Notes: generated by a model not told the origin, from the letters alone. A stretch of 64,000 nucleotides of DNA from Hyaloraphidium curvatum SAG 235-1 (GCA_025558095.1 JAIVFI010000002.1:124001-188000); one strand, 5' to 3'. Positions 38,762-54,604 are shown, counted from the stretch's first letter. Made by a program: numbers and translations.

Positions 38762-38803
38762 TGTAATGAGGAGCTATGCGCGACTGTCTGTAATGAGGAG
38801 CTA
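38762..38803. repeat. 15-bp direct repeat TGTAATGAGGAGCTA (38762-38776, 38789-38803) near the 3' end of the non-LTR element
   Basis: Read directly from the sequence. Confidence 0.9.
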
Positions 38804-38832
38804 GCAATCCCACCGTACACTTAGAAATCCCC

Positions 38833-39776
38833 CTACGCCCCAAGAATCAGCTCCTCATCTACATTCAAACCAAATGCGACCGGCGCGGGGGCCGGAGCGT
38901 TGACAGCGGCGGCTTCGGTGCACAGCTGAAGCCAGTGTTGGAGTTGGGCCGCGACGCCAAGAGCCCAGGCCACCGCGATCCGTTCGCGGAAGCGCCGCAC
39001 AAAACGAGAGTAAAGGCCATCGAGGTCCACGGGCTGCCCATCGCGGCCGACGATCCCGGGATACTGGATGCGCCCCATCTCCGAGGAGAAGCGCGAGAAA
39101 GTGGCAGAGACAGCGCTGTACGAATCAAAAGCAAGCACGATCAGAGGGTAGAAGTTGGCGTTGAAGACGAAACGGGAGTAGTCCTTCCTGGCGGCCTCGA
39201 CCCGCCGTTCGACTGCGTGGCCCGGGACCGAGAAGACCAGGCCCGTGTGCAAATGGGCCATAGAGGTGAGGGTCTTGATCTCGAGCAACCACCGTTTCCG
39301 GGTTTCGCGGTGCGTGATGAGAACGTCGCCAAGGCGGCCAGCATCCGCAGGCGTGGGCGGGGTGACAGTCTCGTAGCCATGCGCAAGGAGGTTTGGCGGC
39401 ATGGGGTGCACGCGGAGGAGCGGGATGGAGCGAAGCGCCGCGCGGATGGCCGCGCAAATGTCGTCGTGACCAGGACTGAAGAGATCCCGGCCATAGCAGC
39501 CCGAGAACGCGTGCTCCCCCGTCAGCGACATGGCCGATCGCTTGCAGCCCCGCCGGCAGGGCAAGGAAAGACCAGGGTAGTCGGCCTCGTGCAGGAGCGG
39601 GAGGCAAAGCCGGAAGCGTACAAGTAAGCGGAAAAAGTTGTTGCGAATGTGGTTGGCAAGCAGCGCGGGAGAGGCAGTCAGGAAAGCCGACAGGCCGTCC
39701 TGCGCCTGGACGAGCCGCTTGCGGCGCTCCAGACCAGCGGAAGTGGTGGGTTGCAAGGCAATCAGAGCCGCGAGGC
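38833..39776 (-). CDS. C-terminal part of the non-LTR ORF: CCHC knuckle plus restriction-like endonuclease
   Basis: CRRGC...EHAFSGC, GHDDI, RLGDV...WLLEIKT (PD-(D/E)xK-like). In frame with 47038-50005 once the LTR element is removed. Confidence 0.85.
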
Positions 39777-39780
39777 GGCG

Positions 39781-40256
39781 TGCGACGGTCCGGGTCGGAA
39801 CCGGGCCTGAAGCTCTAACCCGGCGCGCGAATCCCGCTCGGCTCTTCGGGTCGGATAGGCCCTGAATATGAATAAGCGAACAGCGCTGAAGATACTTGAC
39901 TGTAGCCGGGGGAAAGAGGTTACGGGATGTCTCCCGGGGTGCGTCCCAAGGGCTCTCAGAACGAGGATCCGGCCGGGCGGGGTTCCGCACGGTGGTCGAA
40001 CGACACGGAGAGCACGTAGAGTCAACTGGCGATCAAGATTGTACTGTTACATGTCCCGCTCTTTATATATCCCAGGAGGGTGGCTGTGCCGAGTCACTTG
40101 CGAGTCGCTCGCGAGTCGCTCGCGAGTGACTCGCGAGTCACTCGCGAGTCGATCGCGAGTCGATCACGAGTCGATCGCGAGGACCGACGCCTCCACGCCT
40201 CCGAACCGAAAATGAAAATACCCTTGTCCGAATGTCAGACGTCCTGTACCTTCGCA
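39781..40256 (-). repeat. 3' LTR (476 bp)
   Basis: Identical by eye to 46562-47037; contains TATATAAAG and an 11-bp repeat array. Confidence 0.95.
40090..40181. promoter_or_regulatory. LTR U3 array of about 8 x 11-bp units with palindromic TCGCGA core (same array at 46871-46962)
   Basis: CGAGT(C/G)(A/G)(C/A)TCG tandem units upstream of a minus-strand TATA box. Confidence 0.7.
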
Positions 40257-40271
40257 CGCCCCCACCCAAAA
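40257..40271 (-). promoter_or_regulatory. Polypurine tract
   Basis: TTTTGGGTGGGGGCG immediately precedes the 3' LTR on the minus strand. Confidence 0.8.
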
Positions 40272-40398
40272 GAAGGCGCCGCCCTCGGCGCCACGAAATC
40301 GAAGATCCTCCGCGGAGTGACGTCATGCTTGCAGTAGAAGATGTTGAAGGCCGAGGTGGAGACAACAGATGTTGGAGAGTGTAGGGCCGAAGGGTGGC

Positions 40399-41664
40399 TT
40401 AGGCGTCCTCAAAGTCGACGTCGGCGTCCGCCTCGTCGTCGCTCGGCGGCGGGGCGCGGAGCCGGCGGGTAAAGCCGAGAGCGAAGGCGGCATGCACGGC
40501 TGAGCCGTCCGCGGCCGAGGGGGTGTAGACCGGGGGCATGGTCGACTTGTAGGGAGCGGCCGGGATGTCGTCGTACAGGGCGGCCAAGAGGCCGTCGTCC
40601 TGCGAGACGATGGAGGAGGCGTCGCTGCTGGACACGCTCTCGGGGCGAGGAGCTGGAGGTTGCATATCCCCAGCCTCATCGTCGGAGGTGACGAGGTCCT
40701 CGTCCTTGACGCGGCCGACCGGCGTGGAGGTGACCACGGCGGGCGTCGTTTGCCCCGCCAGGGGAGCCACTTGATTGCCGAGGAAGCGACGCAGGAGGGC
40801 CCGTTGCTCGTCGGCGGTCTTGGTGAAGTGCTCGCGCTGCGCGTTCAGGCCGGCCGTGAGGAGCGTGGTGTGGTCTTGAGCTGAAAGCATGAGCTGCTTG
40901 TGCTGCTCCGACCCAAATCGCTGCAGATGGGCCGCCAGGACGCTCTTGAGGTCGGCCGCAAACTCCGCCATGGGGCCATTGTTGTGACGGGCGAGATTGG
41001 TCTCGACGACGGTCTCGATGGTGGTTTCGAGGTTGGTCCCGGTCTGAGCAACCAGCCCGGCGAGGGAAGAGCCGAACTCCCTCAACTCCTCGATGGTAGC
41101 TTCGTCCACCAGGAGAATGCCGTTGAAGTTCTGACGTTGAGCCTCGAGCACCAACGCAAGCCGGTCGAGCTGCGTCTCGATGGCACCGAGACGAGCGTCG
41201 TCGGTCCGGCGCAAGGCGGTGACGGCGAACTCAAGTTCGCGGTGGCGGCCACTGAGGACCACCTGGAGCTCGTCACGCTGCTGGCGGATCTGGGCGTCCA
41301 GGCGGGCCTCTTGCTGCTCGAGCGTCGCCGTTACGCGGTCAAGAGCGTGCTGCTCCAGGTTGCCGACATTGACGAGGGTGTTGAGCACCGGGTGGAGTGC
41401 GTCGAGGGCTGCGCGGATGGGCATGACCGCGGAGAAGGCGGCCTGCTCGACCTTGTGCAAGTGGGCCGTCGTCTGGGAGTGTCTGACGTCGAGGTCGGCC
41501 CGGAGGTCGTCCAGCCGGGTCGAGAGGGAGGCAAGCGCCGACCGATAGTCCGGGGGTACGACGCCAGGCAACGCAGCGACGGGCGCAGTCGCCGGCGGCG
41601 GCGCCGTGGCCACATGCGGCCGGCGGGGCCGCAGGTTGTGGCCGGCAGTCGTGGGGGTCGCCAT
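40399..41664 (-). CDS. LTR element accessory ORF3, long coiled coil with acidic tail (421 aa)
   Basis: Intact ORF in the env position; heptad-like L/V spacing; no signal peptide or TM helix. Confidence 0.75.
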   Translation of the reverse strand: MATPTTAGHNLRPRRPHVATAPPPATAPVAALPGVVPPDYRSALASLSTRLDDLRADLDVRHSQTTAHLHKVEQAAFSAVMPIRAALDALHPVLNTLVNVGNLEQHALDRVTATLEQQEARLDAQIRQQRDELQVVLSGRHRELEFAVTALRRTDDARLGAIETQLDRLALVLEAQRQNFNGILLVDEATIEELREFGSSLAGLVAQTGTNLETTIETVVETNLARHNNGPMAEFAADLKSVLAAHLQRFGSEQHKQLMLSAQDHTTLLTAGLNAQREHFTKTADEQRALLRRFLGNQVAPLAGQTTPAVVTSTPVGRVKDEDLVTSDDEAGDMQPPAPRPESVSSSDASSIVSQDDGLLAALYDDIPAAPYKSTMPPVYTPSAADGSAVHAAFALGFTRRLRAPPPSDDEADADVDFEDA

Positions 41665-41756
41665 GGGAGACGGTAGCGGCGAGGTCGACGTTGGGTGCGT
41701 AGTCCGCGGCCGCGGCCTCCTGTGGTCCGCCGCTTATATGGTGCGAAGCGCAGGCA

Positions 41757-41892
41757 ACTCGCGAGTGCATCGCAAGTCGCTCGCGAGTGACTTGCGAGCG
41801 ACTCGCGAGTGACTCGCGAGTCACTTGCGAGTCAACCGCGAGCCAACCGCGAGTCAACCGCGAGTCAACTGCGAGTCGAGTCGACCGCGAGT
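41757..41892. promoter_or_regulatory. Internal ~12 x 11-bp CGCGAGT array, putative bidirectional promoter
   Basis: Same unit as the LTR U3 array. A TATA-like CATATAAG (minus strand, 41733-41740) lies between it and the ORF3 ATG. Confidence 0.6.
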
Positions 41893-42032
41893 TCGCCCGC
41901 ACACCGGGTCACCAGTCCCCGCCACGGGGGACGGGGCGCGAGCGAGGGCCGTACGCCATTGCGTCGACGAAAGCGCTCGCGGGGGATCGCGACGTAGGGT
42001 CCAGAAGAGCTGGGGGGATCTCCGCGCCTGTC

Positions 42033-42778
42033 ATGAGTGCGGAGCTGCCGAACGTCGTCCCGCCGAGTTCGTGGTTCGAGGTTCGGTTGCCGACCTTCGA
42101 CGTCCTGCTGTGCACCAAGGTAAGAGCGTAGCGGCGTGGTCCTCGAACGGGAGCTCAGCGCCGCGCCAGGAGGACGACGTGGTCGACTGCTTCCTGCAAC
42201 TGGTGCGTCTGGCCGCCATGCGCGGGATGTTGCCGCTGGCCGAAGAGGCTGGGAACGTCGTTGTCGAGGTCCGAGTGCTCCGTCGGCTCGTCGCCGAGCT
42301 GCGCGAGGCCGGCGGGACCGCCAAGCTGCGCGAGGCTGGCGGGGCCAGAGGCAACGACCCGATCGCGGCCGCGGCCGCAACCCGGACCTCCGGCGTCTTC
42401 CTGCCGGCGATGTCGTCGAAGGGTGCGCCTTCCGTCGGCGAGGGCGAGTCGGCGGCGGACTCGAGGGAGGAGCTCGAGGCGGCCGACGAAGTCCCCGTGC
42501 TGTCAGTCACGCTTCATGCGCCCTCTTGGGAGCTGGACCACTTAGGCGACTTCGAGGCCGCCACTGAACAAGGGAGCGCCTTCCAGACGGCCCAAACGGC
42601 AACTTCAGGTAAAGACGAGGGGCATGTGGTGCAGCGCGGGGAGGCCCGGGAGCAGATTGCGCAGGTGAACGGCTCGACGGGAGTACGCCCCACAAGCGCT
42701 GATCGTAGCTCGTCCATGATCCGAGCAAAGGTTGCAGGAGCGTTGGTAAAGCCCATGGCCATCCGCTCCCACTGGTAG
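42033..42778 (+). CDS. Antisense spliced accessory gene inside the LTR element (3' part probably lost to the deletion)
   Basis: Exon 42033-42119, phase-0 intron 42120-42169 (GTAAGA...GCTCAG...CCAG), exon 2 in frame with ORF 41825-42778. Confidence 0.55.
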
Positions 42779-44742
42779 AGACCGCGGTGCGTCGTGAAGG
42801 CCGTCTTTTCCTTGTCCTCGTCGGCCACCTCCACGTGCCAAAAGCCGGAGCGGATGTCGCAAACGCTCCACACCTTGGCCGCGCTGAGGAGAGCGAGAGT
42901 GTCGCTTGGGTTCTTCATCGGGTAGACGTCGCGCTTGGTGGCGGCGTTGAGCTTCCGGTAATCGATCACCAGGCGCCATTCGCCCGAGCCGTGCCCTTTT
43001 GGCACCATGATGCAGGGCGTGGCCCAGGGGCTTCGCGAGGGGACGACTACGCCCTGCACGAGCAGGTCGTCGATGATCTTGTCCATTTCCCCGCGAAGCC
43101 GGAACGGGGTCCGGTACGGCATCTGGTGGATCGGCTTGAGGTCGCCCGTGTCGATCCGGAAGCGATGGTTGCGCAGCTTGCCGATCCAAGGACCAAACAC
43201 GTCCCGGTAGCGGTCGCAGAGCTTATGGAAACGAGGTTTGTCCCCCTCGCTCAGGATCGTTTGGTCCATCTTGAGCTCGATAGCCTCGACCGGAGGAGGC
43301 TCCACGCCGGGAGGCTGAGGTGGTCCAATCGATCCCGGCGAGGGCACCGCGAACAGATCGATGGTCTCCTCGACCGTGAGCGTGGATTCGGCCGGTTCGG
43401 TGTGGGGCAGCTCGGGCTCCAGCATCGAGATCTGCGCGGGAGCCAGATACGTGGGCGGTTCCGGAGCGAGAAATCCAGGAATCCGCACGCGGAAGCGGCC
43501 GAGGTGGGTGCCCGGGCCGATCGTGACCGGTGTCGTCCCGTAGTTGCGGATGAGAATCGGCAGCCGACCGTCTCTGTCGGGCGTCGCCGACGGGATGATG
43601 AAGAGGCGATCGAACGGCGAAGTGTTCGGCGTCTCGATGACCCCTGTCAAGTCCATCTCCACGACGGTCGCCAAGGGAGTCGTCGGGGCCAGCTCAGCGG
43701 TGATCGAGACGTCCTCGTTGGGGTAGACCGTGATGGAGGTGGTTGAATGGAGCGGGGCGACCAGGTGTGATCCGAAGAGCGGTCGCGCAACAATGTGCAT
43801 TGGCACGACGACCCCCTCCGGATCGTCCTTGAAATAGAGGACCGGCGTCTCCCAGTCCATCTGAACGCGTAGGGCGGAGAGCCAAGGGGTGCCGAGGATC
43901 ACGTCGTCCATGAGACCGTCCATGATGGCGACGTCCATGACGCAGTGTTGATTCCCGACCAGGATGTCCATCTTAGCAACTCCGCGGACCCACATGGTTC
44001 CGCCGGCCGCGGCCGTGCTGAGGGTGCCGAGTGTCCATGGTTTGATCGGTGGCGACGGGTGGATCCGGCAGAAGAAGGACGACCGAACCGCCACCACTGA
44101 GGCACCGGAGTCGACGAGGGCCGCGGGGGTATTCACGCCGTTGACCCATGCCGAAACGCGTGCCGCCTGATAGTGGAACTGCACTTGCGAAGTCCACGTC
44201 CAGCGATCCGGCGGAGGGGCGACCGGAGCAGGTGGCCGCGGGCGAGGCCGAGGGCCAGGCAGCGGTGGTCGTGCGTAGGCGGAAGGAGGAGGGGGCCTTT
44301 CGAAAGGTCCGGGAACGGCGCGGACGGTCGGGCCCTCGTGCATAGGTGCATCCGCTGATCCCGCGTCCGCATCCTGTGCCGCCGGTTCACCGTTTCCCAC
44401 GACCTCGACCGAGCCGGGCGACGCCGAATCCGCTGCCGGCGGCGGGGCCAGGGTCTCGTCGATCGGCATGAGCGCCTCCCGCTGCTGACGAACGGCGGCC
44501 TGTCGAGCTGCCTCCGCCTCGAGGAAGAGGATGTACTCCGTGCCCCCGAAGGGCCAATGATGAACGTGGTCCTCCGCCGTCGGTTCATCGGTCGCGGAAT
44601 CCGACAACTCCGGCGATCCGCCAGGAGATGAAGGGTCCGTGCCGTCCGGCAGCGGGGAAGTTCCAGGAAGAGGTTCCACATGTGGTTCAAGAGCTTGGAT
44701 CTCTGCCCCCCTATGGCCGTGCGGCACTGAGGGCAAAGCTAG
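42514..44742 (-). pseudogene. pol: Truncated pol: aspartic protease, dUTPase-like linker, N-terminal half of RT
   Basis: LVDSGA protease; SPWATP, WRLVIDYRKLN, DIRSGFWH, KTAFTT, MAMGFTNAPATFAR. Homology ends near 42700, before YxDD; no RNase H or integrase. Confidence 0.9.
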
Positions 44743-44749
44743 TTTTTTG
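44701..44749 (-). promoter_or_regulatory. -1 ribosomal frameshift signal (A_AAA_AAC plus downstream stem-loop)
   Basis: CCA AAA AAC TAG at the end of gag; pol is in the -1 frame; CTTTGCCCTC/GGGGGCAGAG stem starts 3 nt downstream. Confidence 0.8.
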
Positions 44750-46394
44750 GCATCGAAGGGGTGTTGCCGAGGCGAGACTTCCAGTTGAGTGGGCGGCGGT
44801 TGGCATTCTTCTCCAACTCCCAGCACTCGTCCTGAGCATGCCCATCCATGCCACAGAGATGGCAGTGGCGAGGCTGGAAGCGCTTCTGGTCGCGGTACTC
44901 CGAGGTGAAGGGCCGGCGATCCTGGCGCTCCTGCTGCTGGCGGGGCCGATCGATCGGAGGAGGCCTCGCGGGGGGGTTCGACCTGGTCTCCGCGGCCTGA
45001 ACCTGATGGCGAGGCGACGGCAGCAGCTTGGTGATGAGCTCCTTGATCTCGACGAGGTCGCTGTTCGGCCCCGAAGGCGGCAACGGCTGGCTCCGACGAG
45101 ACTGGAAGGGGACGAAACGGCGCGGAGGCCGGAACGCAGACTCCCCCGGCGGTCCACCGGTGGGCCTGCGCTCTCCCTTAGGCTCCAGCAGCTTTGTGAG
45201 AGCCTGCGTATGAGCCAGCAGCACTTCCGTCGTCGCCTTGTCGGTCGCCTTGGAGGAGCCCGAAGACGAGTGCTGGCCGACCAGAGCCGGAATCTCCGAA
45301 ATCGAGTTCTGGCCCAGGAAACGGATGTCGCGCGGCTGCGCAGGGCCCGATGCTTGCATGACGGTGCGCATCTTCTCGATGACCTTGGTGACGGAAGTGC
45401 GGTTGATGAGGTGATCCCCGAGGAGCTCCAGCGCCTTCCCGCGTAGCTCCGGGCGCAGTCCGTAGAGCAGGTTCTGGCCGTACACGCTGTCTTGCACTTC
45501 CCTGGTAGGAAGCTGATCGCCGCAGTGCGAGAGGAAACGCGTCTCGGCCAGGGATACGCGGGCAACGAAGGCGTCGAGGGTCTCATCGTTGGTCATCTGA
45601 ATCGTGTTGTAGTGCCGGCGATAATGCATCGATGCGTCGCGGGGCTCGAAGTGGTAGCGTAGCCAGGCAAGCACATCGTTCTGGGTCACCGGAGGATAGG
45701 TGGCCGTCGCGGGATAGTCCGGAGGGCGGTTCTGCGGCGTGATGTTGTGCCACATTGCGCGCGGCAGAGGCCCAAGGAAGACCGGGAAGACCTTGACGAG
45801 GTTGTTGATGGAGCCGAACGCCGTGAGAACCGTAGTGAGGTCGCGGAAGAAGTCTTCCGGGTCCTGCGTAGCGGGATCGAAGGGCTGAACAGAAGCAGGC
45901 AGCAGCTGAGCCGGGAGCTTGGCGGCTCCGCCCTGGCGATCCGCCTGGGGGAGGCCGGTGCTTCCATCGTTCGGCGGCTGAGCGCCAACGATGGCCCGTA
46001 CGGCGTCGACGAACTGCTGCGGCTGGAGACCAGCGGCGGCAGCGTTGACAGCCGGGGCTTGCTCGCTCCGCTGACCCTGCTGCTGTGCGGCGAGCTGCTG
46101 GAGCTGCTGCGCTGCAAGCTGCTCGGCGGCGGCTTGCTGTTGAACTTGGGCAGCTGGCAACTGCTGAGCGGTCTGTTGCGCCACGAGCTGAGCGGCAAGC
46201 TGATCGGCGACGGCTTGCTGGGCGGCTTGCTGGGCGGCGAGTTGGGCGACGTCGTTGGCGGCGGCGCCGACTTGCTGGATCGCGGCCTGCGCAGCTTGGA
46301 TAATCGCCTGGGCCTGCGGGTTGTTCTGCAAATCGTTAGCTTCCTGAGGCTGCTGAACCTCCTGCTGAGGGGCGGCTTCTTGAACGGGGTCCAT
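44739..46394 (-). CDS. gag: Gag with Gln/Ala-rich N-terminus and CCHC zinc knuckle
   Basis: Capsid-like FDPATQDPEDFF...QMTNDETLDAFVAR...GLRPEL; knuckle CHLCGMDGHAQDEC. Confidence 0.9.
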   Translation of the reverse strand: MDPVQEAAPQQEVQQPQEANDLQNNPQAQAIIQAAQAAIQQVGAAANDVAQLAAQQAAQQAVADQLAAQLVAQQTAQQLPAAQVQQQAAAEQLAAQQLQQLAAQQQGQRSEQAPAVNAAAAGLQPQQFVDAVRAIVGAQPPNDGSTGLPQADRQGGAAKLPAQLLPASVQPFDPATQDPEDFFRDLTTVLTAFGSINNLVKVFPVFLGPLPRAMWHNITPQNRPPDYPATATYPPVTQNDVLAWLRYHFEPRDASMHYRRHYNTIQMTNDETLDAFVARVSLAETRFLSHCGDQLPTREVQDSVYGQNLLYGLRPELRGKALELLGDHLINRTSVTKVIEKMRTVMQASGPAQPRDIRFLGQNSISEIPALVGQHSSSGSSKATDKATTEVLLAHTQALTKLLEPKGERRPTGGPPGESAFRPPRRFVPFQSRRSQPLPPSGPNSDLVEIKELITKLLPSPRHQVQAAETRSNPPARPPPIDRPRQQQERQDRRPFTSEYRDQKRFQPRHCHLCGMDGHAQDECWELEKNANRRPLNWKSRLGNTPSMPKN

Positions 46395-46542
46395 GTTTGG
46401 CGAAGGGGAATGAACTTGGTTGACGGAATACGGTTGACAGAAAAGAGTGGCAGTCGACAAGCGCCGGTGCCAGGCGAAGTTGTTTTTGGATTATCGAAGT
46501 CGAAACTGAAGTCGAACGAGGTGTCGAAGACCCGAGAGCAGG

Positions 46543-46560
46543 ATCACGGAGGTCGGACCA
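46543..46560 (-). promoter_or_regulatory. Primer binding site TGGTCCGACCTCC..., probably tRNA-Tyr
   Basis: Starts with TGG 1 nt inside the 5' LTR; complementary to a ...AGGUCGGACCA tRNA 3' end. Confidence 0.75.
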
Positions 46561-46561
46561 G

Positions 46562-47037
46562 TGCGACGGTCCGGGTCGGAACCGGGCCTGAAGCTCTAAC
46601 CCGGCGCGCGAATCCCGCTCGGCTCTTCGGGTCGGATAGGCCCTGAATATGAATAAGCGAACAGCGCTGAAGATACTTGACTGTAGCCGGGGGAAAGAGG
46701 TTACGGGATGTCTCCCGGGGTGCGTCCCAAGGGCTCTCAGAACGAGGATCCGGCCGGGCGGGGTTCCGCACGGTGGTCGAACGACACGGAGAGCACGTAG
46801 AGTCAACTGGCGATCAAGATTGTACTGTTACATGTCCCGCTCTTTATATATCCCAGGAGGGTGGCTGTGCCGAGTCACTTGCGAGTCGCTCGCGAGTCGC
46901 TCGCGAGTGACTCGCGAGTCACTCGCGAGTCGATCGCGAGTCGATCACGAGTCGATCGCGAGGACCGACGCCTCCACGCCTCCGAACCGAAAATGAAAAT
47001 ACCCTTGTCCGAATGTCAGACGTCCTGTACCTTCGCA
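46562..47037 (-). repeat. 5' LTR (476 bp)
   Basis: Identical to 39781-40256. Confidence 0.95.
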
Positions 47038-50005
47038 GGCGCTGGTCCTCGAGACGCGTAAGGTCGCTCTGCAGGCCGTGCCAAACCGGCTGGGCGAAGA
47101 AACTGGCGTCCGCAGGGAGCGTACGGCGGGCGGGCGCGGCGCCCACCGGTTGCCCAGCACGCGCAGCCTCGGCGTACGCTGCGGCCGTGTCATCCTCGAC
47201 ACGCTCAAAGGCGGGGCGGAGGGCCTCGATGACGGGAACCAGTTCCCGCACGTGCTCCACGCCCACACCCCGGGCCGAGGTTCGAAGACCAAGCATGGCG
47301 TCCAAGGGGCCCGCCGTGAGGTTGAGTGAAGACAGGTAAGCCGCCGAGGCCACCTTCTCCGATGACAGAAGCCCCATCCCCGAGTAGTGCAGACCCAAGA
47401 ATACCTGCTCCCGCACAGTCCGACCCTCCACCGACAGCGGATCCAGATCCTCGGCCCGATCTCCCAGCAAGCGCAAGAAGGTGGTGAAAAGCGCGTTGTC
47501 AAGACGTCGAGCAAAGGGTTGGGTAACCGAGGGGGGGAGAATGCGGAGCCAAAACGAGAAGAGCTGGGTCACACAGAGACGGAGGAGGGAGTACAGGCCC
47601 TGGAGGGAGGGGATGTCGGCCGGCATGGCGTAGCCGAGCGCAGCGCGCTCGATTTCATCGAGAAGAGCGGCAATGGAGTCGATCTTGGCCGCGAGGAACG
47701 ACTCCACATAGGCAGGGGTGCCGACCGGGGCACCTACCACCTTGAGGCCGCACGAGCGAGCAAAGTCAGGCGAGCCCGGGGCCGACGCCGTGGCATGCAC
47801 CTCGGGGTCGGCCTCGTGAGGCGGGAAGCCAGCGACGCGGATGTTGTGGGCCGCACCGGCCGTGCGCACCCGCTCCAGCACGGCCGGGTTCGTCGAGAGC
47901 GAAAGCAGGTAGCTCTTGTCCGGGCGGTGGGTCATGCCGAGGGAAGCAAGGCCGTCACGCACCTCTCCCAGGACGGCCATGACCGAGTCCAGCGGCCCGA
48001 CCACGGTGAGGTCGTCGAGGTACCCAAGGATGAGGCAGTCGGGGTGCCCAGAGCGGATGGGCCGCAGCATGCGGCTCATGGCGCAGGAGAAGATGGCAGA
48101 CGACAGCGGGTCGCCCTGGATGTTGCCCTCGTACATGGTGATCCGGAAAAGGAGCTCCGCCGAGCGCCGGTCGCGGAAGTAGGCGTGGGAAGGGCGCGAG
48201 TAAACGAGGTTGTAGTACGGGATAAGCTGAGGCACCTGGCGGACCACCTCGCGCGCGAAGAGGCGGCGCAGCGTATTGAAGGCGTTCCTAGAGTCGACCT
48301 TCATGACGACGTGGTCGGGGAAGGCCGCCAGCCACGCGTTCACCGCGTGGGCGGTCGCCTCCGCGCCCCCGTCCACCCCGTGACCCAGGTCCTCCTGCTG
48401 TTGGAGCTTCCTCAGAAGAGCCTTGTGCCGCACGGCCAGGTACGAGCCCGCGAGCCGCGTGATGCCCTCCATAATGCCAATCGGCCGGAGCCCCCCCTCC
48501 GGCTTGAGCAGAGGGACGAGGATTTGATCCGTGAGGAGCGGCCGGAGCATGGGGGTGTCGAGTCGGCCAGTGCACACGCCGTGCACCATGGCCGCCAGCG
48601 GGCGGAGCTTCCGTCGCGTCGCGTCGTTCTCGCAGTTGTGCACGATGAAAAGTTTGGCCATGCTGAAACCCGACATGCCGGCCCCCACGCCGTCCTTCTT
48701 CCGGCGCAACCGGGCCCAGATGTCCTCCAGGAAAGCCGCGTCCGTGTAGGCAGGGCAGGGCGCGGGCGCGTTGGGGGGCAGAGACAGCCGACACAGCGGC
48801 TCTCCCTCCCGCGGCCCCGGGTACAGCTCCTCCAGTTCCGCCTGCAGCGTGGGCGTGAAGCCAGCCGGAACGGCCTCCCCCGAGAGCGCCGCGGACGCAG
48901 CACCAGGAGCGCCCTTCAAGGCGGCAAGCACGATGGCCTTGAAGAGCTGGTAGTTGAGCGGCCGCAGCCCGTCCCGCCGCGCGCCCCGGTTGACCTGACG
49001 GGCGGCGAAGTAGTTCTGCTCGTACATGTAGTCCCCCGACATGACGTAGCCGCCAAACGCAAGGTAGGCGGTGAGAGTGCGGTGCAGGTCGGTTTCCGGT
49101 GCCGCCGGGTCCTCGTAGGCCCGTTGGAAAGACTCGCTGGCCCGGAAGGCGAGCGTGCTCCAGGTGGTGGTCCGGTAGCGGTGCTTCAGCGGCTCCGGCG
49201 GCGGCGCCCCCGCGCCCCCGCCCGGCGGCGGATCAGGCCCGGGACCCCCGGGTGGACCACCGTCGCCTGGGTCGCCCGGATCACCGCCGTTGCCGTGCCC
49301 GCCAGCCGCGGCGTTGCCGCCCGGCGCGCCGTCGCCGCCTGGGGGATCACCGCCGTCCGGGGCGGCACGCGCCGCCGCCGCCGCCGCCGCCAGCGCCGCC
49401 CGTTGCGCCTGGACGTCCTGCGGGGCGTCGGCCGCAACCCGGGCGGCCGCAAGGGCCGCCATCAGCGCGGGCGCGGGTGGCGAAGCACGGGGAGATGCCG
49501 ACGATGCCGCCGGTGACGCCGGTCCCTCCGCGCGTCCCGTGGCAGCCGCCCGCTCGGCACGCACGCGGTCGAGGAACTCGACGAGATCGGGTGGAAGCGA
49601 AGCTAAAGAGACGCCGAGTGGCGGGTTAGCTGCGTCCGGGTTGCACGAGGTGTGCTGTCCAGAAACACCGGCACCAGAGGCGTTTGCGGCGTAGGGACGC
49701 CGGCAACCCCCGCACCGCGCGAGCCCCATGGCGCGCAACGCATCGGCAGACAGGCGCTGCATCGCCAACCAGTGCTCCGGGCTCCGTGTGACCCGAAGAT
49801 GACCGTCCCGTTTGTTTTTGTTTGGAGTTGGCTGGAAGCGGCAACCATCAACCGGGCACGCATGGAGGCCGGGTTCAGCAGGCGCCTCCGCCATCGGCAC
49901 ATCGCCGTCGATGCAAGATTGGTGATGAAGAGATAGAGCTCCGATGTTGGCGAAAGCTGCCGCGCAGCGGTGGCAGCTGTAAGGCAGGAGCGGCGTGCGG
50001 CTCAT
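47038..50005 (-). CDS. Non-LTR ORF, N-terminal part: zinc fingers plus CRE-type reverse transcriptase
   Basis: YSCHRC...HHQSC, CPVDGC; LRPIGI, GHGVDGGAE, KVDSRNAFN, QGDPLS, GYLDD, KVVGAPVG, GMGL. Confidence 0.92.
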
Positions 50006-50853
50006 GGCGAATACGGTGGCGGCGGCGATGCCGGTGTCCCGCCGCCAGGATCAGCTACCGCGGACGGTGCTTTGTCCGACGAGATATCCCAATCGTCGAG
50101 CGCATGTGTCCGCATCCAAACCTCCTGTGACTCGGTCAGGTCGCCCCCCGCCCTGTGCCAGGCCGCAAGCGCCGACCACCCGTCACCGATAGCATCACGG
50201 CCGCCGTCATCGAGGAGCTCGGAACCTGGCCATTCGAGGTGCGCCGGCGAACCGGGCTCCGTGTGAGCATACCAAGGAGGCAAGGTGCGCGTCGGAGTGG
50301 ATACTTCCGAGGAGCTCTGCCCCCCCCCGGCCGTTGGTGCCGGCGGCGTGCCGGGGGTTGTGCGGGGCGGCGCAGGCGGCAGCTGCAAGCTCGGCACGGC
50401 GGTTGCAGCTGGGGTTTCCCACGGAGGATGGCCTGGGTGCGCCGGGAGCATGGAAGCGGCCGAAGCCGGGGCATCAGCGATCAAGATCGGCGATGACGAG
50501 GAGGGAGATACTTCCGAGCGTGCCGCCCCTTTCCCCCCCGCTGGTGCCGGCAAGCGGGAGGAGCCGCGGGGCGGCGTGGGCAGAGTGTGACCCTCGGCCA
50601 AGCTAGGCACGGCATTTGGCCGAGGGGCCCCGGGGGACGCGGGGTCAATGTCGGAAGTCTCCCCTGCTGCCGCGAACGGCCTCGGAACTCGGTGAGACGT
50701 TGTAGATAGTGGTAGTTGGCGTACCGGTGAAGACTGCAAAACAGCAAAAGATGGAGGGGCTGACCGCGCCCGGGAGGTATCCGGACGAGCTCGGCGCCGA
50801 GAAGAGCAGCCCACTACTCGGCGTTGCCACTTGCTTGGTGGTGTTTTAGGCAT
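50002..50853 (-). CDS. Pro-rich 283-aa middle ORF of the non-LTR element
   Basis: Its ATG overlaps the ORF1 stop (ATGCCTAA) and its TGA overlaps the RT-ORF ATG (ATGA). Confidence 0.5.
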   Translation of the reverse strand: MPKTPPSKWQRRVVGCSSRRRARPDTSRARSAPPSFAVLQSSPVRQLPLSTTSHRVPRPFAAAGETSDIDPASPGAPRPNAVPSLAEGHTLPTPPRGSSRLPAPAGGKGAARSEVSPSSSSPILIADAPASAASMLPAHPGHPPWETPAATAVPSLQLPPAPPRTTPGTPPAPTAGGGQSSSEVSTPTRTLPPWYAHTEPGSPAHLEWPGSELLDDGGRDAIGDGWSALAAWHRAGGDLTESQEVWMRTHALDDWDISSDKAPSAVADPGGGTPASPPPPYSP

Positions 50854-52984
50854 TCAAGGACGGTGAGCCAGGAGCCGGCAGCAGGGATCCGGTTGACATG
50901 GAGGCGGCCTTGGCCTGGGGGGAGCCGGGCTTGCGAGCGGCCGCCTTGGCCTTCCGTTCCGCTTTGGCGGATTTGACGTCGATTTGCTGATACGGCTTGG
51001 CAACCTTGTCCGGGTTTGTCCCTGCCACATCCTCCACGGGACGGCCCTTGCCTGCGTGCTTGGGGCCTGGGGCCATCGTAGGATCACCAACCGCGGATGC
51101 CCCAGCGGCCTCATCGGCCGTGTGCATGTCTTCGCTTGGTGCCTCCGAGTTCGAACCATCGCCCTCAGCAGAGGCTTCGGAGGCAGCGTCGTTTCCACCC
51201 GAGGCCTCAGAGCCGGTGGCATCCTCCTCCATCGCAGATTCCGTGCCCTCCATTGCGGGAGCAGCAAGCTCCAGATCCTCCAGCGCGGTATTGGCTGCAA
51301 CCTGCTGTGCAGCACTGCTGATGGCGTTCTCAGCGGCCAGCTGGTCGGCACCACCCATGTCCTCGTCCCCATCCTTGTCAGCCGGCTCCAAAATGGGAAG
51401 ACCATGGAAATCCATCTTTTCGGCGGCGTCAGACTCCCCCCAATCGACCGAAGCACCGGCACTACCACCACCAAGTGCCGAAAACCGGTTGTGGGACGCC
51501 TTGGCCACTGGCTGGGCAAGAGCTGGGGGCGCAGAGCCTGCGCGCTTGCCGGACGGCCCAGCTGTAAGCCACTCGTCGGCCGCAGGGGCGGTGGGGGAAG
51601 CCAGATGCGGAGGAACGACCTCTTCCCTCAGGGGGGGCAGCCGTGGGGTCGTGGCGGGCTCCACCGTTGGGGGAGAGAGCCGTACGTTGGCCGGGTTGTG
51701 AATGCAGTCCGCCTCGTGTGCACGGCGTGCTTGCGGGCTGGCAAAGGCGCCGGGATTCATGCGGTTGAGACCGTCTGGGCAGTAAGCACAGTTGGTGCAC
51801 GTGGCATCGTCACCGACGTGGCCGCCCGTGCGCTTGCAGTGGCCGCACTGTCCGTTGCTACTGTCATAGCGGACAGCTGGGCGAAGGAGCTTGTGCTGGA
51901 GGAGCGTCCCCCACGAGTCAAGGAAGCAGTACGAGGGTGGGCCAATGCGTGCTGCGCGGTCAAAGAAGGCATCAACCCCGCACTGCGAGACGTCGAAAGT
52001 GACCCGCCAGAAGGCGTTGCTGTCGGTGCCCGAGATGGGAGCCGCTTCAATGACTTGGCAAGGGGCCCCATAGTGGTTCTGGAAAGTCGCGTAGAGGCGG
52101 GCCCACCAGTCCGGGCACTCGTGCACCGAACCAGGGACGATCATGGGCCCGATCTTGAGCTCGGCGTGCGTGTCCTTGAAGACAGGGTGGATGCGCAGCC
52201 GACGCGTCGGTCCGTTTGGGAACTTGACCTCCAGCACCCCCTGCTCCACCAAGGCGTTGATAGCGTCTGCCCCGTCGACAGCACCAACAACACAGAAGAG
52301 GTCCAGTCGCGAGTAACGCGGGTTGTAGCCTCGCGTCTCGGTCGTGAAGACGGTGGTGGGGAAGGTCGCCTTCGCCACGGCTTCGGCGACGACGCGCCGT
52401 CGGTCCTTTGGCACACCGTTGAGGTCGATGAGGCAGTGGGGGACAGGCCCAATGAAGGCCGGCGTGTAGCCCCGACCGTTGGCGTGCGGTTGCACCCGAT
52501 CGATGAGCTTGGCGTAGTTGGTGGGCGCCGAGAAAGGCATGGCAGAAGCCAGATGCTCCGCCATCGCGCCGTCCGTGACACGAACAATCGGGCGGTCGGG
52601 CGAGGTGCGCGACGTTGCTGCGGCGAAAGAGCGAGACCCCAGGCGCGTGGCGGGGGCGGTTGCTTTCGGGAGACGATTGTGCTGAGCCGGCTCCTCCCGG
52701 GCGCCGCCGTTGGCGGACGCGGGGCGGATTTCAGTGGTCGATTCAGCAGCGTCCTCCTTAGAACCTGTCAGCTGAGCCGTAGCACCAGCGGGGGCCGGCG
52801 CGGGCTCCTCTGCCGCGCCAGGGAGGCGAGGAGAGGCAGCGACGCCGGGAGCGTGGGAAGAGTGGACGGGATTCGCAAGCGCCTCCGAGGAGGCCGCGGC
52901 GAGCGCAGGGGAGACCTTGCCATCAGGCAGGACCACGGGAGCGGCCGCATCATTGGGCCCCTGCCCTGTGTCAGGGGGGTCCAT
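50846..52984 (-). CDS. ORF1 (gag-like) of the non-LTR element
   Basis: Intronless, about 712 aa from ATG 52984; CGHCKRTGGH...C and CAYC...HEADC zinc-binding motifs; acidic then basic disordered tail. Confidence 0.7.
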   Translation of the reverse strand: MDPPDTGQGPNDAAAPVVLPDGKVSPALAAASSEALANPVHSSHAPGVAASPRLPGAAEEPAPAPAGATAQLTGSKEDAAESTTEIRPASANGGAREEPAQHNRLPKATAPATRLGSRSFAAATSRTSPDRPIVRVTDGAMAEHLASAMPFSAPTNYAKLIDRVQPHANGRGYTPAFIGPVPHCLIDLNGVPKDRRRVVAEAVAKATFPTTVFTTETRGYNPRYSRLDLFCVVGAVDGADAINALVEQGVLEVKFPNGPTRRLRIHPVFKDTHAELKIGPMIVPGSVHECPDWWARLYATFQNHYGAPCQVIEAAPISGTDSNAFWRVTFDVSQCGVDAFFDRAARIGPPSYCFLDSWGTLLQHKLLRPAVRYDSSNGQCGHCKRTGGHVGDDATCTNCAYCPDGLNRMNPGAFASPQARRAHEADCIHNPANVRLSPPTVEPATTPRLPPLREEVVPPHLASPTAPAADEWLTAGPSGKRAGSAPPALAQPVAKASHNRFSALGGGSAGASVDWGESDAAEKMDFHGLPILEPADKDGDEDMGGADQLAAENAISSAAQQVAANTALEDLELAAPAMEGTESAMEEDATGSEASGGNDAASEASAEGDGSNSEAPSEDMHTADEAAGASAVGDPTMAPGPKHAGKGRPVEDVAGTNPDKVAKPYQQIDVKSAKAERKAKAAARKPGSPQAKAASMSTGSLLPAPGSPSLNA

Positions 52985-53092
52985 ACTCTGGTTCAAGCAA
53001 AACTTGGGCGACAATGGGCCGTCTCAGAAGAGCCCGCGTGCGCCGCGGGCGCTGCCCGCGCTTCTGCTGCTGGCTTGTGGCGAGGCCAGACG

Positions 53093-54604
53093 ATGAGCTA
53101 CCCGAACCCCGTTCTCTTCCGGTTGGAGATCCGCGGTGGCGGCTCCGGACCGCCAGAGACGGCGACAAAGGTCGTTGGCGTGCCTCCGGACAAGGCACTG
53201 GAACCGCCGTTGGTCCTCTCCGCCGCGGACGCACTCCTTGCCGATCCGGCGGCGAACTTTGCCGATTCGGTGCTCCAGACAACGCCGCGGAAGTGCGTCA
53301 AGTGCGGGAAGCCCACGACGGGCCGGGCGGTCGGAGCCTTGTATGTCCCGGCCGCCGCCGGTCCGCCGGACGAGTGCACGGTCACTGCCGTCCCTCATTG
53401 CGCCACGCCGGCGTGCAAGAGGGTTGCCCAGCAGCGGCTGCGCGAGGTGCAGGGGCCGATAAAGACCACGCGGCCCGAATCCAACGCGGTTACACCCCTT
53501 ACGATGCGGATCTGTGTGAGGGATCGGCGTCCGGACAGCCAAACCGTCTTCGAAGAAGTGTTTCTGGTGGACCACAAGGTACTGGACATGGAGGTTGAGA
53601 GGCGAAGTCATGTGCTCAGGGAGGTCATTTCCGTCGAATGGCGCCGCTCGTGCACAAAAACGTCCCGGTGGCCGTGCGTTGTTTGCGGACAGGGCTGCTT
53701 TTCTAGCTCGGCATTTTCGACCCTAACCTACCAGGGGGATCGCTTTTTCTTCATTACGAACCAGTGGCCGGCGTGCGCTCAGTCTCGGGGCGGTCCCATG
53801 AAGCCTTGTTTCGATCTCGCTCACGCTATCGTCGCCCGGTTCCAAGGGGACACGCCGGAAGATCGCCTGCGCTACGTTCTCGAGTCCAATCCGGACTTCA
53901 CGTGGGCTTACTTGAGGTTGTGCTACCGCTCAGCTGAAGGCAGCGACATCCTCGTGGGCGAGCTTGTGGACAAGCTTTCGCAGCGTTTCCGCAGCGACTC
54001 GGATCCGATCGGCAACATCTTGCAACCTGAGGTTGACGAGATGGTGAAGAAGGTAATGGCCGACCGCAAGCTGCCGTGTTTCCGCTGCGGAAAGCCCACT
54101 TTCGGTCGCTCGGCCCACTTCGACCGGCGCTCGGGCGATTGCGTGCCGCGGATAGAATACCACGGACTGCTCTTCCCGCATTGCATGGACGGACCGTGCC
54201 GGGCGTACACGGCGAGCCGTCTGCGGAAGCACGGAATGAAGGGAGGCGGGGGCATCACGACCTTCCGTTCCTGCGAGTGGTGCCAAAAGACGACCGACGA
54301 CCCCAAGAAGGACCTGAAGAGGTGCAGCGTATGTAAATCCGTCTTCTACTGCTCGCCAGAATGTGCACGCGCGGACAGGCCGAGGCATTCAGAGTGGTGC
54401 GTGCCGCCGAATAGCGCGCTGGGACCGACCGACGGAGGGAATGGAGACGAGGATGGCGGAGCGGTGGATCAGGAGGCTGCTGTGCAAGGCGAGACGGCCG
54501 AACCTGATGTCGCTTCGGGCTCCAACCCCGTCGGCGAGGAGGGGCCCAAGAACGACAACGGCGTCGCATCGAAAAAGAAGAAGAAGAAAAAGGCTGCGAA
54601 GTGA
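53093..54604 (+). CDS. MYND zinc-finger protein with three N-terminal CxxC...C-xn-C modules
   Basis: CEWC...KRCSVCKSVFYCSPECARAD...HSEWC; poly-Lys NLS-like tail. Confidence 0.8.
   Translation: MSYPNPVLFRLEIRGGGSGPPETATKVVGVPPDKALEPPLVLSAADALLADPAANFADSVLQTTPRKCVKCGKPTTGRAVGALYVPAAAGPPDECTVTAVPHCATPACKRVAQQRLREVQGPIKTTRPESNAVTPLTMRICVRDRRPDSQTVFEEVFLVDHKVLDMEVERRSHVLREVISVEWRRSCTKTSRWPCVVCGQGCFSSSAFSTLTYQGDRFFFITNQWPACAQSRGGPMKPCFDLAHAIVARFQGDTPEDRLRYVLESNPDFTWAYLRLCYRSAEGSDILVGELVDKLSQRFRSDSDPIGNILQPEVDEMVKKVMADRKLPCFRCGKPTFGRSAHFDRRSGDCVPRIEYHGLLFPHCMDGPCRAYTASRLRKHGMKGGGGITTFRSCEWCQKTTDDPKKDLKRCSVCKSVFYCSPECARADRPRHSEWCVPPNSALGPTDGGNGDEDGGAVDQEAAVQGETAEPDVASGSNPVGEEGPKNDNGVASKKKKKKKAAK

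Follow-up and report, generated by a model that had tools for sequence, protein, structure and literature searches.

The window analysed here (64,000 nucleotides) comes from Hyaloraphidium curvatum (GCA_025558095.1), an early-diverging fungus with a compact and GC-rich genome. It contains a LINE copy in which the RT ORF (ORF3) follows two other ORFs, with a stop/start overlap at each junction. The best explanation, to which we give a probability of roughly 60%, is a young R2-like RLE LINE with three ORFs on one transcript and coupled reinitiation. The membership of ORF1 and ORF2 in the element, and reinitiation, are plausible but unproven. A first-pass annotation of this DNA is partly confirmed: its ORF layout and overlaps stand, but its uninterrupted RT ORF and its zinc knuckles do not.

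The LINE copy and its locus

The LINE copy (Table 1) sits in a short divergent promoter region, with a HECT ubiquitin-ligase gene on one side (the insertion is 60 nt upstream of its ATG) and a MYND-finger gene on the other. Its 3' end was placed at 38789 because homology with an identical, 5'-truncated sister copy stops exactly there. The 5' end may be anywhere within 52985-53092, the upper limit being the ATG of the MYND-finger gene at 53093 (+ strand). No TSD of at least 8 nt was found around 38789-52984, and the 5' end is not set in this way. A repeat check of the locus revealed no terminal repeats belonging to the LINE itself. The 15-mer at the end of the 3' UTR (TAGCTCCTCATTACA) is seen again in the flank, at 38776-38762.

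Table 1. Features of the LINE copy and of the LTR element nested in it (window positions)
Feature	Position	Strand	Basis or remark
LINE copy, minimum span including nested LTR element	38789..52984	-	3' end fixed, 5' end bracketed
ORF1, 712 aa	50846..52984	-	Stop-free frame
ORF1 Cys/His cluster, aa 380-429, CX2CX5HX6CX2CX2C...HX3CXH	51698..51847	-	Regex and residue positions
ORF1 stop/ORF2 start overlap, ATGCCTAA	50846..50853	-	Sequence
ORF2, 283 aa, Pro/Ala/Ser/Gly-rich	50002..50853	-	+1 frame relative to ORF1
ORF2 stop/ORF3 start overlap, ATGA	50002..50005	-	ORF3 in -1 frame relative to ORF2
ORF3 N-terminal part, 988 codons, fingers, low-complexity tract and RT	47042..50005	-	Pfam, motifs, relatives
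ORF3 C2H2-like finger, CX2CX12HX3C, aa 11-31	49975-49913	-	Motif only
ORF3 C2H2-like finger, CX4CX12HX8H, aa 50-78	49858-49772	-	Motif only
RT domain RVT_1	48505-47852	-	Pfam, E = 4.9e-10
ORF3 C-terminal part, 315 codons + TAG	38833..39780	-	In frame with N-terminal part
CCHC of ORF3 linker	39558-39496	-	Motif
PD-(D/E)xK endonuclease core (H105, D152, E167, K169 of C-terminal piece)	39468-39274	-	Motif, alignment
3' UTR, 44 nt	38789..38832	-	Ends ...TAGCTCCTCATTACA (38803-38789), without poly(A)
Nested Ty3/gypsy-like LTR retrotransposon, 7,257 bp	39781..47037	-	Identical LTRs and TSD
LTRs of nested element, 476 bp each, identical, TG..CA	39781-40256; 46562-47037	-	Repeat comparison
Gag with CCHC of nested element	46460-44739	-	ORF, domain
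Protease and truncated RT of nested element	44826-42514	-	ORF, domain
Coiled-coil ORF of nested element, 421 aa	41664-40399	-	ORF
TSD of LTR insertion, 4 bp, GGCG on + strand	47038..47041; second copy 39777-39780		Uninterrupted sister copy

The second LINE copy, on contig JAIVFI010000011.1, is inserted inside an LTR. It is 5'-truncated, identical at all 1167 of its 1167 nt and lacks poly(A); the series ORF1-ORF2-ORF3 is known from one locus. Its TSD is GACGCA(CCCC), that is 6-10 bp, accompanied by one extra untemplated T. The footprints of target-primed reverse transcription (TPRT) are therefore present (no LTRs or TIRs, a 5'-truncated copy and a TSD), and the truncation, the 6-10 bp duplication, the untemplated T and the missing poly(A) are the products that TPRT would be expected to leave. 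We found no specific repeated target: the two insertions lie in sequences unrelated to each other, one a gene promoter region and the other an LTR. Two sites are too few to judge a loose preference; both 3' flanks begin with GAC. No Rfam match or tRNA gene was found at either insertion flank.

ORF3 is interrupted at 47041/39781 by the nested LTR element, which has further copies in this assembly, on contigs 11 and 45. The earlier description, which had overlooked this element, had the RT ORF running unbroken to 38833; in fact the frame opened at 50005 stops at 46919, within the LTR. The sister LINE copy has no LTR insertion. It carries a single CGCC at the insertion point and there the two halves of ORF3 are contiguous. 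Having had its ORF3 divided by a very young LTR retrotransposon, the present copy is now dead. ORF1, ORF2 and both halves of ORF3 are nevertheless stop-free and, together with the identical second copy with its TSD and the identical LTRs of the nested element, this indicates a young and mobile LINE. Judged from these sequences, it is multi-copy and recently active in this genome.

The ORF3 protein and its relatives

ORF3 totals 1303 codons in its two in-frame halves. Its N-terminal fingers gave no match in Pfam, and no Myb motif was found. The RLE motif, C-x3-C-x10-H-x4-C-x8-GHD-x30-E-x11-RLGD-x14-E-x-K, aligns with that of the relatives, in whose alignment of the C-terminal piece C75, H90, H105 and D152 are invariant. 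When the family profile was compared with PDB, R2 proteins came first (E = 2.6e-11 to 4e-10) and L1 ORF2p later (1.4e-6). By sequence, the only PDB match of the C-terminal piece is to the RLE region of R2, and it is weak (E = 0.5). With the AF2 model of this piece (pLDDT 73), the best six Foldseek matches are R2 chains (R2Tg, R2Bm, R2Pm); a restriction enzyme and Prp8 come next. ORF3 encodes a genuine RLE-type LINE protein with N-terminal fingers, RT, a CCHC linker and a predicted PD-(D/E)xK nuclease. The previous classification as an RLE-bearing non-LTR retrotransposon is upheld by RVT_1, the RLE motif and the R2-first results of both the PDB profile and Foldseek comparisons. Such a protein would copy the element RNA into a nicked target by TPRT.

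A HMMER search retrieved 5,419 RT relatives, and the C-terminal domain is common to 141 of the 192 that were pooled. The N-terminal part of ORF3 is 49% identical to the relative P0002. The homology includes the N-terminal region, and the C-terminal part of ORF3 aligns to the P0002 C-terminus (E = 2e-38). In a tree confined to these relatives, ORF3 and P0002 are sisters on a long branch. The only close relative (L001, 49% identity) likewise starts its RT ORF at an ATGA (224-227) that overlaps an upstream ORF, and a stop lies in the RT frame 3 codons upstream of the start; the tail of this upstream ORF has no similarity to ORF2. Among more distant relatives, single-ORF elements of 3.3-4.8 kb prevail. 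A single ORF is usual in the RLE group, though not a strict criterion, and the present copy, with three, departs from it.

ORF1 and ORF2

ORF1 has a disordered N-terminus, a central region (aa ~135-450), a Cys/His cluster and an acidic, then Lys-rich, tail. Zinc knuckles had been attributed to it; we find instead one atypical Cys/His cluster (CX2CX5HX6CX2CX2C...HX3C, aa 380-427) and no canonical CX2CX4HX4C (retroviral-type) knuckle. ORF1 has no Pfam match and no homologue by word search. AF2 run on the single sequence gave a poor model (pLDDT 43). The secondary structure in that model suggests two beta-alpha-beta-beta-alpha-beta units, and Foldseek returned weak matches to tandem RRM and Cas6-like folds; at low confidence, the modelled fold is possibly tandem RRM-like.

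An ORF1p is a hallmark of APE-type, not RLE-type, LINEs. ORF1 resembles the type I ORF1p of L1-like elements (RRM + CCHC) in its place upstream of the RT ORF and, according to the low-confidence model, in its possible tandem RRM-like folds, after which come a Cys/His cluster and a basic tail. It differs in that the two share no sequence homology and in that its metal motif is non-canonical. ORF1 might be an ORF1p/Gag-like RNA-binding protein.

The coding status of ORF2 is uncertain because its third-position composition (A 0.17, T 0.18) equals the background, whereas every other coding region at the locus is biased. ORF2 gave no Pfam match and no homologue in sequence searches. In dinucleotide shuffles of its interval, 1.2% of trials were stop-free per frame and 3.6% in any frame. 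ORF2 may be disordered and under weak constraint, and could serve mainly to bring ribosomes to the ORF3 AUG.

These properties bear on a rival explanation, which we consider rather unlikely: that a one-ORF RLE LINE (or ORF3 with a long 5' UTR) lies beside an orphan host gene, ORF1. ORF2 would then be UTR or intergenic sequence that is open by chance, and both overlaps a coincidence. The wider family is indeed single-ORF, no sequence link from ORF1 or ORF2 to any retroelement was found, ORF2 lacks codon bias, and 1-4% of shuffles yield such an open frame by chance. The central region of ORF1 has a clear codon bias (A3 = 0.07, C3 = 0.50) with host-like usage and, in so compact a genome, a divergent gap of 108 nt between ORF1 and the MYND-finger gene would not be unusual. 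However, both junctions overlap exactly, the ORF2 ATG being the first codon after an upstream stop in its frame (a TGA immediately precedes it), and the ATGA coupling to an upstream ORF is repeated in a relative of 49% identity. An orphan host gene would also need an intergenic gap of ~900 nt, or else only ~60 nt between the ORF1 stop and the HECT ATG, while neighbouring intergenic gaps in the genome measure 76-359 nt; the spacing would be atypical of this fungus. That an intact 712-aa ORF1 has no gene model in the annotated assembly is weak evidence in the same direction. In our preferred reading, the 3 kb upstream of ORF3 would be part of the same transcript as ORF3.

Stop/start overlaps and translation

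Three head-to-tail ORFs are present on the minus strand, joined as first proposed. The ORF2 ATG precedes the ORF1 TAA by 5 nt, giving the overlap ATGCCTAA, the RT ORF ATG (50005-50003) overlaps the ORF2 TGA, and an in-frame TGA is found 16 codons upstream of this ATG (50053-50051). Overlap of stop and start, a feature of reinitiation cassettes, thus occurs at both junctions (AUGCCUAA and AUGA). The downstream starts are preceded by 24 and 9 intervening AUGs, and no slippery heptamer occurs in the 48 nt that lead up to the ORF2 stop. Frameshift fusion and leaky scanning are, on these grounds, unlikely routes to the downstream ORFs.

A second rival accepts three ORFs in the element but has ORF2 and ORF3 expressed through an internal promoter or subgenomic transcript, splicing, an IRES or frameshifting. 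In eukaryotes, ribosomes reinitiate inefficiently past an ORF of 712 codons unless special signals help, and none was detected: RNA structure upstream of the overlaps is not above shuffles (MFE z-scores 0.08, 0.76 and -0.03), and a single UGGGA, 82-86 nt ahead of the ORF3 AUG, occurs at chance frequency and is missing from L001. The -1 frame of ORF3 relative to ORF2 is, moreover, the classical gag-pol relation. Nevertheless, a shift would have just 48 nt in the LINE and 9 nt in L001 before the RT-frame stop, with no slippery heptamer, the conserved ATGA points to use of the AUG itself, and an Rfam search of the LINE found no element, an HDV-like ribozyme included. We judge these other routes improbable.

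It is scarcely credible that the three ORFs are a single ancestral ORF broken by frameshifts in a decaying copy. ORF1 and ORF3 do share a frame modulo 3, but over the ORF2 interval the two other sense frames hold 8 and 4 stops, the 8 being in the ORF1/ORF3 frame. The element is young (100% identity to the second copy over 1167 nt), and the position of the ORF3 start is kept in L001, with its stop 3 codons upstream.

Reinitiation coupled to termination at the stop/start overlaps would remain our preferred route to ORF2 and ORF3, being favoured by the exact overlaps, the stops just upstream, the intervening AUGs, the lack of a slippery heptamer and the ATGA in L001. In the original proposal of a tricistronic RLE element translated by reinitiation, the RLE assignment (RT, nuclease and R2 matches) and the two overlaps hold, while reinitiation itself is what we infer from them.

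Comparison with known systems

Termination-reinitiation operates in fungal cells (PMC2699510). The calicivirus TURBS, the AUGA of victoriviruses and the UAAUG of the hypovirus CHV1 (fungal host) resemble the LINE in having an AUGA/UAAUG-type overlap after a long ORF. In the viruses the mechanism requires either an 18S-complementary motif upstream or a pseudoknot, whereas in the LINE the motif is at chance level and no structure exceeds shuffles. Among LINEs, SART1 of Bombyx (R1 clade, APE-type) has ORF1 and ORF2 coupled via an overlapping stop/start codon (PMC3894237). The likeness is in LINE ORFs joined by such an overlap; SART1 is APE-type and bicistronic and uses UAAUG with a downstream RNA structure, whereas the Hyaloraphidium LINE is RLE-type with two successive overlaps and no detected structure.

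The CRE clade (CRE1/2, SLACS and CZAR; fungal MoTeR, FoTeR and Cnl1) also consists of RLE LINEs with N-terminal C2H2-type fingers and includes fungal members, and SLACS and CZAR were described with an upstream ORF. Most CRE elements are now regarded as single-ORF (PMC12278014). The CRE REL motif is C[X1-3]C[X7-8]H[X3-4]C[X9-10]RHD/N..E..R/KPD..[X12-14]D/E (PMC12857005). ORF3 fits this pattern, which is common to all RLE clades, in order and in most spacings, but deviates in having X10 for X7-8 between the second C and the H, GHD for RHD and LGD for R/KPD. CRE targets are spliced-leader genes or telomere repeats; the Hyaloraphidium LINE is flanked by single-copy promoter DNA at one site and by an LTR at the other.

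R2, an RLE LINE of animal rDNA (structures 8gh6, 9dou, 9nl2 and 9nl3), is the best PDB match both by profile and by fold. Like ORF3, it combines zinc fingers at the N-terminus with RT, an alpha-helical linker bearing CCHC and a C-terminal PD-(D/E)xK nuclease, and both elements lack poly(A) and carry untemplated bases where the 3' end joins the target. Sequence identity is just about 10-14%. R2 has a single ORF, a strict 28S rDNA target and a 5' HDV-like ribozyme, whereas the Hyaloraphidium LINE has three ORFs. The two extra upstream frames with their stop/start overlaps are an unusual layout for the R2-like RLE group.

Identification of an RLE polymerase-endonuclease

The third of three head-to-tail frames on the minus strand (ORF3) encodes a bona fide polymerase-endonuclease of a LINE of the restriction-like endonuclease (RLE) type, because of its reverse transcriptase (RT) domain, a family profile that finds R2 first, its RLE motif, its R2-like fold matches and its N-terminal fingers. 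The protein (1303 aa when joined) is interrupted by an insertion and was searched as two separate pieces. Pfam identified RVT_1. An exhaustive HMMER search returned 5,419 relatives, the best only 33% identical, and a word search supplied one nearer relative, P0002, at 49% identity. A single-sequence search of the PDB matched only the YXDD region of HIV RT and a profile was required: the family profile matched R2 retrotransposon proteins first (E = 2.6e-11 to 4e-10), then LINE-1 ORF2p (1.4e-6). A FastTree tree of 152 RT cores pairs ORF3 with P0002 as sisters (SH 100), the pair sitting on a long branch.

The piece that follows the insertion matches the C-terminal end of P0002 (E = 2e-38) and carries the motif C-x3-C-x10-H-x4-C-x8-GHD-x30-E-x11-RLGD-x14-E-x-K, whose residues follow one another as in the RLE pattern described in the literature (PMC12857005). 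Among the relatives, C, H, H and D do not vary. With an AF2 model of this piece (pLDDT 73), the top six Foldseek matches were to R2Tg, R2Bm and R2Pm, followed by a restriction enzyme, Prp8 and bunyavirus cap-snatching nucleases. At the start of ORF3 are two C2H2-like fingers, in a region homologous to the N-terminus of P0002. The non-LTR retrotransposon of RLE type proposed in the first-pass annotation is therefore supported by Pfam, PDB profile, motif and Foldseek; the hallmark targets of CRE elements (spliced-leader genes, telomeres) were not seen at the LINE insertions. The LINE is a new, recently active RLE family in Hyaloraphidium curvatum.

Reading frames and the nested LTR element

The coordinates proposed for the three ORFs, both stop/start overlaps and an in-frame TGA closing the RT frame 16 codons upstream of its ATG were all found again on re-reading the sequence. 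The start of the RT frame also stands, but its unbroken run does not, since a nested LTR element cuts ORF3 in two.

Features of the LINE and its surroundings (window positions)
Feature	Position	Strand	Remarks
ORF1	52984-50846	minus	712 aa
ORF2	50853-50002	minus	283 aa
ORF3 start	50005	minus	open frame from there ends at 46919, within LTR
ORF3, before insertion	50005-47042	minus	988 codons
ORF3, after insertion	39780-38836	minus	315 codons, then TAG
Nested LTR element	39781-47037		Ty3/gypsy-like
LTRs	39781-40256; 46562-47037		identical, 476 bp, TG...CA
GGCG flanks	39777-39780; 47038-47041
Between LTRs			gag with CCHC knuckle; aspartic protease and truncated RT; 421-aa coiled-coil ORF
11-nt tandem array in LTRs	40090-40181; 46871-46962		CGAGTCACTCG
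Same array, inverted	41757-41877		inside element
LINE 3' end	38789		TAGCTCCTCATTACA
HECT E3 gene ATG	38728		60 nt from LINE end
MYND gene ATG	53093	plus	108 nt from ORF1 start

At the first junction (tcc ttg aAT Gcc TAA) the ATG of ORF2 lies inside the final codons of ORF1 and is directly preceded by a TGA in its own frame; at the second (cc ATG A) the TGA of ORF2 is overlapped by the ATG of ORF3. ORF1 and ORF3 share the same frame modulo 3, ORF2 being +1 of ORF1 and ORF3 -1 of ORF2. GC content across the window is 60-75%. When the ORF2 interval was shuffled with its dinucleotides preserved, a given frame was free of stops in 1.2% of the trials, and any frame in 3.6%. We rejected the idea that the ORF2 region is coding in a different frame: amino-acid composition accounts for the GC3 'best frame' pattern, and stops are frequent in the remaining two sense frames (8 and 4). 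An apparent 1206-aa ORF on the plus strand (50984-54604) was also discarded as artefactual: the MYND-finger gene accounts for no more than its terminal 503 codons (53093 onwards), and the preceding 703 lie antisense to ORF1, where the DNA is GC-rich. The window has many such long antisense ORFs (for example, 47387-49516).

The insertion inside ORF3 is a Ty3/gypsy-like LTR retrotransposon, delimited by a repeat search and direct comparison of its LTRs, and it inactivates this copy of the LINE. The two ORF3 pieces are multiples of three and share one frame. The LTR element itself looks non-autonomous. Its RT ends after about two-thirds of RVT_1, no RNase H or integrase ORF was seen within it, and its 421-aa ORF has no Pfam match. 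This ORF clusters with 'DFJ74DRAFT_747442 [Hyaloraphidium curvatum]', a protein located on contig 45 of assembly GCA_025558095.1.

A sister copy and the ends of the element

Fetching further sites of the 421-aa ORF led to a second copy of the LINE on JAIVFI010000011.1 (contig 11). This 5'-truncated fragment of 1,167 nt corresponds to window positions 47216-47042 joined to 39780-38789 and is identical at 1167/1167 positions; the LINE is thus multi-copy and very young. At the point where the window copy carries the LTR element, the sister copy has a single CGCC and reads ...LEDQRRLAAL... through the junction, which confirms the boundaries used to excise the insertion. It also sets the 3' end of the LINE, which has no poly(A). 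The fragment is inserted in an LTR; its target duplication is GACGCA(CCCC), and a single T has been added at the 3' junction. Of the two LTR halves, the one upstream of the fragment is only 94.6% identical to the window LTR and the one downstream 99-100%. The same fragment occurs inside an LTR in every unit of an 11,079-bp tandem array of LTR-element units (at least 3-4 units, L074-L076, JAIVFI010000011.1, ~498.8-542.2 kb) and is therefore counted as one insertion event. A 263-aa gene model is called on the truncated copy; a look-up of this model gave no record.

For the window copy, no target duplication of at least 8 nt was found within 4 kb, so that its 5' end is not marked in this way. Both 3' flanks start with GAC. 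The terminal 15-mer TAGCTCCTCATTACA occurs twice in 38762-38803, 27 nt apart; the second copy (38776-38762) starts 12 nt past the LINE end that the sister copy sets and just 33 nt away from the ATG of the HECT gene, and reflects either a 27-nt terminal repeat or the remnant of an earlier micro-insertion. An Rfam search, covering HDV-like ribozymes and target RNA genes, found none. The MYND-finger protein adjoining the LINE is recorded on contig JAIVFI010000002.1 of GCA_025558095.1; with the cluster of the 421-aa ORF, this record identifies the host as H. curvatum (Monoblepharomycota). In an empty-site comparison the MYND protein and a methyltransferase protein were singletons at 90% identity. 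The LINE is young and apparently non-site-specific. In the annotated assembly, no gene model covers ORF1 (intact, 712 aa), ORF2, the RT part of ORF3 or the LTR gag/pol (43093-53092).

Do the upstream frames belong to the LINE?

RLE LINEs are regarded as the early-branching, single-ORF, site-specific half of the LINEs, a separate ORF1 being a trait of the APE LINEs, which arose later. ORF1 and ORF2 are putative parts of the present element. Neither matches Pfam. No homologue was found in a word-index search with the ORF1 core, by phmmer and tblastn against 160 relatives and 71 loci, among viral contigs or by exact look-up. ORF1 could instead be a host gene, but the gap to the next gene would then be ~900 nt or ~60 nt, outside the 76-359 nt range of neighbouring gaps, and this favours its inclusion in the LINE. 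The central part of ORF1 shows a normal coding bias at third positions (A3 = 0.07); those of ORF2 (A 0.17, T 0.18) are at background. When modelled from its sequence alone, the ORF1 core gave a poor structure (pLDDT 43) with two beta-alpha-beta-beta-alpha-beta units and weak matches to tandem RRM and Cas6 folds, and ORF1 has a Cys/His cluster. The possible resemblance of this modelled fold and cluster to ORF1p is only a lead. Derivation of the Cys/His region from a duplicated RLE linker/CCHC was rejected (tblastn hints at E = 0.1-0.4, hhalign probability 0.2, 141-sequence profile E >= 0.36).

Possible coupled translation

Leaky scanning is an unlikely route to the downstream frames since 24 AUGs lie between the starts of ORF1 and ORF2 and a further 9 before ORF3. 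Frameshifting into ORF3 would have to occur within 48 nt in the window copy and within 9 nt in L001, the contig carrying P0002 (run ERR14822422), and neither stretch has a slippery site. For these reasons, the most economical reading of the sequence is that ORF2 and then ORF3 would be translated by coupled termination-reinitiation at the overlaps. SART1 provides a LINE precedent and a hypovirus shows that the process works in fungi. RNA structure upstream of the overlaps does not exceed that of shuffles, and the UGGGA motif occurs only at chance level.

The upstream ORFs and their stop/start overlaps are genuinely present in the sequence, and the only close relative has one of the overlaps too. 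In L001, an upstream frame that is open as far as the contig end terminates in a TGA shared with the RT ATG (at 224), again as ATGA, and a stop 3 codons before this ATG closes the RT frame; this is an argument for a functional and ancient ATGA. The tail of this upstream ORF has no similarity to ORF2.

Taken to its full extent, the tricistronic reading is that a lineage of RLE (R2-like) LINEs in an early-diverging fungus independently gained a gene for an RNA-binding protein resembling ORF1p, together with a spacer ORF. Two serial termination-reinitiations on a tricistronic RNA would lead to the RT-endonuclease, and ORF2 would be maintained as an open frame less for the sake of its protein than to convey ribosomes. 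We give this roughly one chance in three. If true, multi-ORF organisation and coupled translation would have originated more than once in LINEs, and this would be a natural eukaryotic case of two serial reinitiations after long ORFs. H. curvatum is culturable, which permits direct tests by RNA-seq, ribosome profiling and reporters. If ORF1 and ORF2 are merely unrelated neighbours, an ordinary new RLE LINE family with a nested LTR insertion remains. R2-type proteins are under development as gene-insertion tools, and an RLE enzyme that is divergent, was active recently and is relaxed in its choice of targets would be of practical interest in that field.

Organisation of distant relatives

The RLE group is described in the literature as single-ORF (PMC5678591; PMC12278014). 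Distant relatives on metagenome contigs of 3.3-4.8 kb mostly have one long ORF beginning near the contig end. Scanning metagenomes with an alignment of two sequences gave no match; a second scan provided 66 distant loci on short contigs. A 278-codon frame upstream of the RT in one locus (L005) is uninformative because a run of N separates the two. Another contig (L011, JACCDX010251093.1, 373-8116) carries two single-ORF RT-RLE elements, 50% identical and head to tail, ~220-240 nt apart, which suggests that in that organism one was inserted beside or into the other. Finally, a 727-aa RT of the ORF3 family (P0004, 32% identity) lies on a bacterial-looking contig of 87.6 kb (L072, ENA ERZ25039510 contig_3538), at a distance of ~6 kb from clustered NusG-SecE-L11-L1 genes; either chimeric assembly or a transfer could account for this.
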